Assembly (NCBI GenBank): GCA_977016875.1 | Contig: CDRNST010000102.1 | Coordinates: 868,001 to 932,000, forward strand | Length of the DNA stretch: 64,000 nucleotides | Direction of reading: 5' to 3' | From: Pavona decussata | Taxonomy: Eukaryota | In this document: positions 52,901 to 55,900 of the stretch, piece after piece | Numbering within the stretch: the first letter of the stretch is position 1 | Layout of the letters: each line of letters begins with the position of its first letter | Notes under the pieces: generated by a model | Database searches by the model: none | Seen by the model: the letters and a program-made list of their open reading frames with translations, nothing else | What the model was told of the DNA's origin: nothing | Made by a program: the position numbers and the translations under genes

Positions 52901-55900
52901 CCTCGACTCTGAGATGACCCCGTCCTACCAAGTAGCCAGTTTCTAAAATAGTGTCCCAACTTGAATTTATTTCCTAACTGTGCATCGCGTATCCCCAACG
53001 AGCCCTCCATGGGGGTTCGGGTGTGCGGCTCAGTTCTCTAAACCTTGTCCCTATTTCAGACCAAAATATCAAATGATTGGGTACCCTTTTTCAGAACTGT
53101 CGTCTAAAACTCATATCCATTTTCAGACTTGGTTTCTTGGATCCATTCCGTTTTCAGGCTCACGCTGTCAGACCAAATTGGTTACAACATGTACCACCAA
53201 AACGGTTCAAAAACCATACCTACGTTATAGTATATAGCTTATGCAGGGGGCGAACCTTGCAGTCAGATACATACTTGTTATGCAATGCTTTCGAGTGGTA
53301 CTTCTTGAAATATTCCACGAGTGACTTGATATTTCTTAGTATACACACAAGCCTGAGCTATGCCACTCATTGGATTAACGCAAAACGTCACTTTTTAATT
53401 CTTTAACGACAAATACAATCAGTGAAAAAATATTCATGAGTCGAATTTCCGCACAGCTGATCGGACTGCGTAGAAAACTTAATACGACAGAGACATGATA
53501 GAGACCAAACCGAGAATCAACAGAATGCGGCAACCGTGGACAGCTGTTTCGAGCTGGTTGGCTCTCGTCAGCACGGTGTAGCACAGGAATAAGTGTTCTA
53601 CCAAATGCACATGGTAGTGATTTCGGATGGGACCAAATTCAGAAATCGGTACACGTCATAGCGCGTGACTACGAACAATGAACAAAAGAACTGAAATATC
53701 ATGTGGCCGTCGCCATAAGTTAAATGAGAAAAACAAAACTTTCCTTCATAGGTAAAAAAAAGTATTCAACCAGTTGTGTAAGACAGGACATGGTGAGAAC
53801 AGACATTTTGGATACACTAACTGACATCAAAATTCAGAATTTCGGGCACTTTAAATTACACAAGTCGCTCGTTTCGCTGATTAAGGGGCCGTTTACATGG
53901 TGGAAGGAAGATCCAAGCACTAAGAAGATCCGAGAAGGCGAAAAACCTTTCTGTTTGCTTTGCATGCAGAAATTTCGGCCGAAGTTGTTACCAAGTGGAG
54001 AATGAAAAAAGAATAACTGTCGGCCTTGAGCAACTGAACGCCTGGCTGCCGCCATGTTTGTTTTTTTTGTTCCTAGTACTAAGATCTTCCGAGCGAAAGT
54101 TGTTTACATGGTGCTAGGATCTTCCTAGTTCTAGGATCTTCCTATCTCTCAGCCAGGAAGCTCCTATCTCTAGGAAGAACCTAGCGCTAGGGCCAAGTGC
54201 AACTTTTTGCATGTAAACTGAATAGAGAAAACATATGGCGCTAGGATGATCCGCCCTCTAGGATCTTCCTAGTGCTAGGATCTCCCTCCCTCCATGTTTA
54301 GAGCATGAAAGGGAGCGATTTCAAGAATGCAGACATTTGCGTGCACTTGCGTTTTCTTTCGCTCTCGTATCCTTGATTGGCTTGTGGGATGGAAAATGAA
54401 AAATTGAAAATTTCGTCTCCATTATTCATTTAAAATAGGAAGACTTTGTTGTGTAATAGATTAATTAAAGCACATGATTTGTGTAGTAACATTTTTTTTT
54501 TAAATATTTCATTTCTTGAAGTTATCCTGGAATCAAACAGAATAAATTGGGAAATGTGTTGTATTTGGACAGCTTTCAGTTTTTATGAAGCTGATGAACT
54601 GATAGAAGTGTTTCATTTTTTACATGTAACCTGTAATTTCCTTTTTGTTCCCTTACCTTTTTGCCCTTTTTAACACAGGATTTTCCCGCCCTCTTTCATA
54701 GTGTGACTCTTCACAGGCGGCCACGCGCGCGCACACGGAAAAGAAAAGTGTTTGGTACCCATTTACCTCATGCTATGAGTTTGTACCGGCTATTTTTTTT
54801 TTTTAATAATGTAAGGCTTTTCAAAAGCTCCTGTATTTTTTGGACTCATTGAAGGAACTGGAGTTTGGCTGAGCTGTCGGAGCTGCATACATGTTAGGCC
54901 GGTGGCTCGAAACGTCTTGGAGGATGGACGGGACCAATGCACGAACGATACCAAATGTAACGAGTTGCGGATCGTTGCACCAACGTCAGAAACTTTTACA
55001 TTCGGAAACTCGGACACGTTTAAATTCAATTTCAATTATTGTCAGTTAAGATACAACATTCAAGAAGACGTTTGCTTTATCTGACTTGTCATTTGCCCCG
55101 CGGTCACGCATGTTTTGACTGAAAGCGTATATTGCGTGACAGTTAAGAGATACGTCAAAAGGTTCAATGGTCGTTTGGCGGCTAGAAGCAAACTCGTCTT
55201 TTCTTCTTGTGAAAAGGATTTTTAAGGTACATTAAGCCATATAATCAGTTAAAGTAACGACTAACCTTGTTTGTGATTTAATTTGTTTAGTAAAGTTAAC
55301 GTAAATAAAAATATTCTATGTGGAAATCAAAACGAACTAATTTATATGCAAATTTGTCGATGTTGTAGCCCTAAACCAAATTACGTGTTCGTAACTAAAA
55401 TCATATTTACTAACGTTAAACCTGTCCCAATTCAAGCGATTGACTTTATTGAACATTGTGCTATGAAAGAATAACCAGAGTTTTGAATTGTTTGTTGGAA
55501 AAATCAAAATTAGCGAGTGTGATGTGAAAATTGCTTGCCCTCCTTTAAAGGTCAAAAGGTCAACTTTTGATGATAAATAGCATGTTTAAATAGCGCTCCA
55601 AAAATTTATCGTTTCATTTACCCAAAAATTTTATTTCATCAAATCGTACACGAAACATTGCTTATTCCGATGAATATAGTCTTGGTTGACAAAGCCATGT
55701 ACCAGGATGCTTTTTTTGCGGTTGAATTTTACATTATTTTGGCATGCTGTAATTCCGCTAGAAACGGTAAACTTTTAAAATTTGGCCAAAAATTCTGGAT
55801 CACATTGAATGTACATTTGACAGCGTGAAAGTGTGAGGGATTTAGTTTACTTATGTTCAATTGCTTCGATTTTTATGTTACTCCTTCGTAATTTCAAGAC

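Follow-up and report, generated by a model that had tools for sequence, protein, structure and literature searches.

A sequence-intact type I hammerhead ribozyme motif in a truncated repeat unit, nested in a DNA transposon within a BTAF1 intron of Pavona decussata

A 64,000-nucleotide stretch of the Pavona decussata genome (GenBank assembly GCA_977016875.1, contig CDRNST010000102.1, forward-strand positions 868,001 to 932,000), referred to here as the window and numbered from its first letter, contains exons of BTAF1/Mot1. In one of the introns lies a 45-nt hammerhead ribozyme motif of type I, to which a first-pass annotation of the bare sequence had drawn attention. The motif sits in a truncated, non-coding repeat unit, which is itself nested in a larger DNA transposon (the host element). 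The features on which the analysis relies are as follows:

40999-41151: N-terminal BTAF1-like exon
50840-50971, plus strand: BTAF1/Mot1 exon upstream of the host element, from a motif in its translation
51231-56118, no strand assigned: host element, a non-coding DNA transposon of 4,888 bp whose long inverted ends are bordered by TTAA on either side
51231-52197 and 55152-56118: inverted arms of the host element, 967 nt, 98% complementary
52639-52792, no strand assigned: 154 consecutive N within the host element
53416-53753, minus strand: 5'-truncated single hammerhead repeat unit, about 340 nt, non-coding, delimited by homology in alignments to L073, L004, L051 and other copies
53438-53532, minus strand: conserved tail of about 95 nt downstream of the ribozyme, from column identity among independent insertions
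53533-53577, minus strand: type I hammerhead ribozyme motif, 45 nt, sequence-intact, from the full Rfam model RF00163 and covariation in helices I and II
53538-53539, minus strand: predicted self-cleavage site, 3' of C17, the C of GUC being position 39 of the motif in the Rfam alignment
53886-54296, no strand assigned: insertion of about 411 nt resembling a miniature inverted-repeat transposable element (MITE), nested in the host element separately from the ribozyme unit and found as solo copies elsewhere
56674-56880, plus strand: BTAF1/Mot1 exon downstream of the host element, from phmmer matches to Mot1 structures

The first-pass annotation had placed the motif in a BTAF1 intron, in antisense orientation, and this placement is upheld by the plus-strand exons on either side, the downstream one of which (56674-56880) matches residues 394-458 of two Chaetomium Mot1 chains (6g7e_B and 7zb5_E) in phmmer, with an E-value of 8.4e-12. 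The exons at 50840-50971 and 40999-41151 are taken to be BTAF1 from their likeness to the human protein sequence. As the flanking exons lie on the plus strand, the motif is intronic and antisense to BTAF1, and what the host pre-mRNA contains is thus the ribozyme's complement and not the ribozyme itself.

The identity of the motif relies on a covariance-model scan, a check that the first-pass annotation had proposed. It returned a single match, at exactly 53533-53577 on the minus strand, to the family RF00163 (Hammerhead_1), with a score of 42.0 bits against a gathering score of 34 and coverage of model positions 1-45 of 45. This was the sole significant match in a 2.1-kb segment searched on both strands (52500-54600; E-value of 8.3e-9) and the sole Rfam family above threshold in the full 64-kb window (E-value of 2.5e-7). 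Direct reading of the alignment gives the same picture. Helix I consists of six perfect pairs (ACCGUG with CACGGU), and helix II of four (GAGC with GCUC), closed by the loop CAACCA. The catalytic core reads CUGACGA, and all elements of a type I core are present (CUGANGA, GAAA, A15.1-U16.1 and an N-U-H triplet). On the 3' side of helix II, GAA is followed by the A15.1-U16.1 and C-G pairs, which flank the palindromic AGCU, and then by the GUC triplet, so that helix III amounts to 2 bp with a self-complementary loop of 4 nt. With C17 at 53539, cleavage is predicted between 53539 and 53538. The core, the three stems and the cleavage position are all as the first-pass annotation had described them, the last being read from the Rfam alignment.

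A chance match to the consensus would be favoured by the shortness of the motif and by the frequency with which large genomes contain minimal strings of hammerhead type. The genome at large (602 Mb in 1,180 contigs) speaks decisively against this explanation: a 33-nt pattern covering core plus loop has 379 exact matches, against none for the reversed control, and at least 53 matches reach the Rfam level. Two main variants carry compensatory changes in helix II, one of the AGCC/GGCU type and the other of the UUCC/GGAA type, while rarer variants alter helix I too. Over 22 distinct variants and 14 pairs, 94.8% of the cells are paired and five pairs are changed on both sides, although these variants were collected by structure-aware searches, which inflates the pairing. 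The covariation score was reached by none of 500 shuffles, and sliding the pair partners lowers the pairing to 23-35%. Helices I and II thus covary between sub-families, where the first-pass annotation had named a lack of covariation among genomic copies, along with a lack of cleavage in monomer and dimer, as what would count against it. Combined with the E-value of 2.5e-7 in the window, the compensatory changes and the position of the motif in the most conserved part of a repeat family, these counts refute a chance match, to which we attach a negligible probability.

Beyond helix I, an internal loop (UAC on the 5' side, U on the 3' side) and a distal stem of 2-3 bp are conserved across sub-families. 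One pair of this stem is U-A in one sub-family, G-C in another, and mismatched in the sub-family of the window. The arrangement recalls loop 1 of canonical type I ribozymes, and a UAC internal loop beside helix I is shared with the Schistosoma hammerheads. The best-scoring hammerhead of the genome, at 54 bits, is found elsewhere (L001:1501-1545, that is, C206:723433-723477). Its helix I reads ACUCUG and its helix II GACC, and it lies about 280 nt downstream of an open reading frame (ORF) that contains an REJ domain, a position that may place it in an intron of a polycystin-like gene.

Metazoan type I hammerheads with a helix III of 1-2 bp and a palindromic loop are dimer-dependent (PMC4209133; for axolotl, PMC7229834), and the first-pass annotation had supposed the same here. 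The predicted folds bear this out. Taken alone, the 45-mer has an alternative minimum free energy (MFE) fold of -14.9 kcal/mol, in which the CUG of the core is paired with the helix III region, and its hammerhead fold, at -9.0 kcal/mol, lies 5.9 kcal/mol above. For two strands, the MFE is -33.9 kcal/mol, and in this fold an 8-bp ACAGCUGU helix III links two complete hammerheads. The monomer, with its 2-bp helix III, is thus predicted to misfold, whereas the dimer is predicted to form two complete ribozymes; as modelled, the window motif conforms to the dimer dependence known from metazoan type I hammerheads. A need for two motifs to pair by way of a weak helix III (Forster et al. 1988, cited in PMC4209133) would be common to the window motif and the hammerheads of newt satellite 2 and Schistosoma Sm-alpha. 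The window motif resembles these in overall type I architecture and also in loop 2, which is close to the Rfam consensus CAAAUA, but the host phylum and the repeat unit are different. Within the window, neither a second hammerhead (Rfam scan) nor a tandem or direct repeat around the motif (repeat searches) was found, as the first-pass annotation had noticed.

The sequence surrounding the motif was compared with the genome using a 601-nt query, which gave two classes of matches. The first comprises about 17 places, each matched almost in full or in split form at 87-99% identity; the second comprises many shorter matches at 78-87% identity, in which only about 330 nt is covered (window 53754-53426). 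Using the copy at L073 as a ruler (1.14 units, with a terminal redundancy of 70 nt), the second class was found to belong to a repeat with a period of about 490 nt. All copies traverse the ribozyme. Their 5' ends vary, from 526 to 780 in coordinates derived from L073, while most 3' ends fall about 100 nt past the ribozyme, and some copies run on into a further partial unit. Head-to-tail tandems are seen only away from the window, for example on contig C12, where two motifs of the window type lie 491 nt apart on the same strand; head-to-head pairs are also present. A sister family shows the same arrangements, with a 505-nt tandem in L014, and has the ribozyme and about 190 nt, at 76% identity, in common with the window family.

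The window locus itself holds one unit and no array. This unit is truncated at its 5' end near 53753, has lost 23 nt by an internal deletion immediately upstream of the ribozyme, and has a 3' boundary that is uncertain by about 10-20 nt (53416-53436). Its GC content is 43.5%, and the predicted fold of the 490-nt unit has a z-score of -4.8 relative to shuffled sequences (0 of 100 reaching it). The ribozyme and the 95-nt tail are the most conserved parts of the family: among 16 independent insertions, the mean column identity is 0.947 for the ribozyme and 0.935 for the tail, against 0.855 for the upstream part. The string TGAATA(C)TTTTTT, present at both junctions, was considered as a target-site duplication but not adopted as one, since its 3' occurrence also aligns to the continuing unit in longer copies. 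The proposal of the first-pass annotation that a solo Penelope-like or retrozyme unit lies here is in keeping with the single-unit anatomy and with the family comparisons.

The transposon named by the first-pass annotation is indeed present in the BTAF1 intron, although it consists of two layers, the ribozyme unit being nested in a DNA transposon; this nesting is the new point at this locus. The genome holds at least 16 more copies of the host element, which are 90-99% identical and have the same arm ends. For five of five copies (the window and four others), TTAA, identical termini and unrelated outer flanks are found at both ends, except that the C441 copy has a single substitution in the terminus of its far end. 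These features identify a cut-and-paste element with TTAA target duplication. Wherever a copy spans the site, the ribozyme unit is found in it at the same position, with 87-98% identity, which makes the retro-insertion older than the spread of the DNA transposon. The same order is consistent with the identities, the unit being 79-86% identical to other members of its family and the transposon copies 90-99% identical to each other. Judged from these alignments, the ribozyme unit is a passenger of the host element and not an independent insertion into BTAF1.

In its TTAA on both sides, inverted ends, lack of coding capacity (no ORF above 125 amino acids in the element) and dispersed copies, the host element is like non-autonomous piggyBac-type transposons, and the genome holds 119 matches to PF13843 (piggyBac DDE_Tnp_1_7). 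It differs from them in its 967-nt inverted ends and in its termini, which begin with GAGCGC (GAGCGCTCCCC), whereas those of piggyBac are of the form CCC...GGG. Neither of two larger relatives, on C96 and C202, contains a PF13843 match, and as no transposase is linked to the element, an assignment to piggyBac was not adopted. These two relatives have 8-26 kb between the matching parts, and may hold an autonomous form.

Taken together, we consider it probable, with good confidence, that the motif is an intact type I hammerhead in a dead, 5'-truncated single unit of a retrozyme or Penelope-dependent retroelement with a period of about 490 nt, which was carried into BTAF1 by the DNA transposon. 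By analogy, the anatomy of the family fits that of an animal non-LTR (long terminal repeat) retrozyme (PMC7229834), while its style of insertion fits Penelope, whose copies show 5' truncation and tandem and inverted partial arrangements (Craig et al. 2021, PMC8557442). Metazoan non-LTR retrozymes have been described in coral, mussel and axolotl (Cervera and de la Pena 2020, PMC7229834). Like these, the family has a type I hammerhead whose helices I and II measure 6 and 4 bp and whose short helix III carries a palindromic loop, set in a non-coding, non-autonomous repeat of low GC content, devoid of long terminal repeats, primer-binding site and polypurine tract. Tandem copies elsewhere, a unit RNA that is predicted to be strongly self-paired, and the presence of Penelope-like elements in the same genome complete the likeness. 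It differs in that the window locus is a single truncated unit without an array, spread secondarily by a DNA transposon. Metazoan retrozymes are expressed as unit-length linear and circular RNAs.

Several points weigh against this interpretation. The units of this genome, of about 490 nt (505 nt in the sister family), exceed the published size range of 170-400 nt for animal retrozymes (PMC7229834), which is descriptive rather than strict. A target-site duplication of the ribozyme unit was not established, and the covariation set carries the inflation mentioned above. Finally, a search for an autonomous Penelope partner was unproductive. Penelope-like elements are abundant, with at least 150 matches to the GIY-YIG domain, some of them in ORFs of 800-1041 amino acids and often in head-to-head pairs. 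A sample of 20 loci was examined (47 kb; 12 from the top GIY-YIG family, and 8 that represent other GIY-YIG variants), and yielded no Rfam hammerhead at E<=1 and, with the family profile in nhmmer, nothing below an E-value of 1, so that no autonomous partner was linked to the family. A single weak blastn match of the unit to these loci (E-value of 7e-4) was judged to be due to chance.

The same data bear on a rival explanation, in which the window unit is a fragment of the terminal repeat (pseudo-LTR, pLTR) of an autonomous Penelope-like element rather than a member of a separate, non-autonomous retrozyme family. The abundance of Penelope-like elements suits it, as do the 5' truncation and the tandem and inverted partial copies in the family. 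The boundary between the two is also thin, since animal retrozymes have been argued to be non-autonomous Penelope-like derivatives that arose from pLTRs (bioRxiv 10.64898/2026.07.22.740005). Hammerheads of Penelope terminal repeats have in common with the window family the proposed action as dimers, the 5'-truncated, tandem and head-to-head insertions, and massive copy numbers in invertebrates. Nevertheless, no ORF with a retroelement domain, whether reverse transcriptase or endonuclease, lies within 1.5 kb of 60 sampled ribozyme loci, and none of the first 100 listed pattern matches has any of the 150 GIY-YIG matches listed within 10 kb of it. The period is only 490 nt, and the unit profile finds nothing in the 20 Penelope loci. 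The size of the helices argues in the same direction. The canonical metazoan form of type I is distinguished from the minimal hammerhead ribozyme (min-HHR) of Penelope, whose helix II measures 6-8 bp and bears a 5' bulge, whose helix I measures 4-5 bp, and which lacks helix III (Cervera and de la Pena 2014, PMC4209133); with helices of 6, 4 and 2 bp, the window motif is of the canonical form. The type I assignment of the first-pass annotation stands, with the refinement that the motif is not the min-HHR of Penelope repeats. Overall, an origin in a pLTR appears improbable, although it is the most credible of the alternatives considered.

In the course of this search, a loose regular expression picked up a CUGAAGA / 6-7-bp hairpin / GAAA motif in 12 of 12 loci of one Penelope-like family (L061-L072), about 400 nt downstream from the GIY-YIG domain, on the coding strand. 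It resembles the core of the Penelope min-HHR, but was not counted as a hammerhead, as Rfam made no call at E<=1 in L061 and L070, the two loci that were scanned. One of these, L061, also contains two identical tRNA-like sequences (314-386 on the minus strand and 634-706 on the plus strand; Rfam tRNA, 49.6 bits each), which are inverted around a 137-nt hairpin and adjoin the Penelope-like element.

The copies of the host element show what becomes of the motif outside its own family, and allow a further possibility to be weighed, namely that the ribozyme has been co-opted and retained by selection, processing either transcripts of the host transposon or an antisense RNA from the BTAF1 intron. 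Of 14 aligned copies, 8 have the motif unchanged, and substitutions in it, at a rate of 1.4%, are nominally fewer than the 2.6% in the rest of the unit, as co-option would have it; this difference is, however, not significant across the 14 copies (Fisher p = 0.07), and selection on the motif was consequently rejected. Four of the 14 copies are altered at conserved positions, through C17 to G, G5 to C, G8 to A, and C15.2 to G, the last of which breaks the C-G pair of helix III, and other copies show changes in stem I. Such changes fit neutral decay. Moreover, the monomer is predicted to misfold and has no partner in cis within the window, and the copies are young (90-99% identity), so that age alone accounts for the intactness of the window motif. 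Co-option is, thus, very unlikely.

Under the retrozyme or Penelope-dependent interpretation, the history of the locus would have begun with the insertion, long ago, of a unit of the source family into the ancestor of the 4.9-kb non-autonomous, TTAA-targeting transposon with long inverted ends. In that source family, following what has been described for related systems (PMC7229834, PMC4209133) and compatible with the anatomy seen here, tandem units would be transcribed, and neighbouring hammerheads would pair via the palindromic ACAGCUGU, which would extend helix III and allow the multimer to be cut into unit-length RNAs. A host RNA ligase may then circularise these RNAs, and a Penelope-like reverse transcriptase may copy the circles into DNA, giving 5'-truncated, tandem and head-to-head insertions. 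The DNA transposon carrying the unit would subsequently have multiplied by cut-and-paste, one copy ending up in the BTAF1 intron in an orientation that places the ribozyme antisense to the gene. There, cutting would require both transcription of the minus strand and pairing in trans with another transcript of the family. This locus holds a single unit with neither a partner nor signs of selection, and the ribozyme most likely does nothing there.

The window copy is an ordinary and well-documented addition to the known hammerhead-bearing retroelements of animals, and matters little in itself. Its setting is more instructive, as it indicates that intronic ribozyme motifs can be passengers of DNA transposons, and that copy counts and insertion-site statistics of retrozymes consequently need to be corrected for hitch-hiking. 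The paralogous transposon copies, in turn, constitute a natural control for neutral decay, in which the motif is not under selection once it is outside its own life cycle. It is conceivable, though highly improbable, that the DNA transposon keeps the unit because the ribozyme trims or destabilises read-through transcripts, or that the transposon serves as a second, DNA-level route by which ribozyme units reach new loci; if true, this would functionally link two classes of transposons.

Other variations were found among the copies of the host element. Two of them, L039 and L040 (on C289 and C88, respectively), have a copy-specific stretch of about 1.9 kb at the position equivalent to the 154-N run of the window, including an ORF of 269 amino acids without a Pfam match (L039:1-807). 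On C125, at least three copies and extra arms are gathered within about 200 kb (~742-951 kb). These three copies share an extra insertion of about 400 nt at the position equivalent to window 53611, which suggests local segmental duplication rather than independent transposition. The 411-nt MITE-like element at 53886-54296 has inverted ends of about 48 nt and internal repeats of the CTAGGATCTTCCTAG type. Solo copies of it, with 90-92% identity, are present on C109, C104, C198 and C186, and the C202 copy of the host element, which is without exactly the 53886-54296 segment, serves as its empty site.

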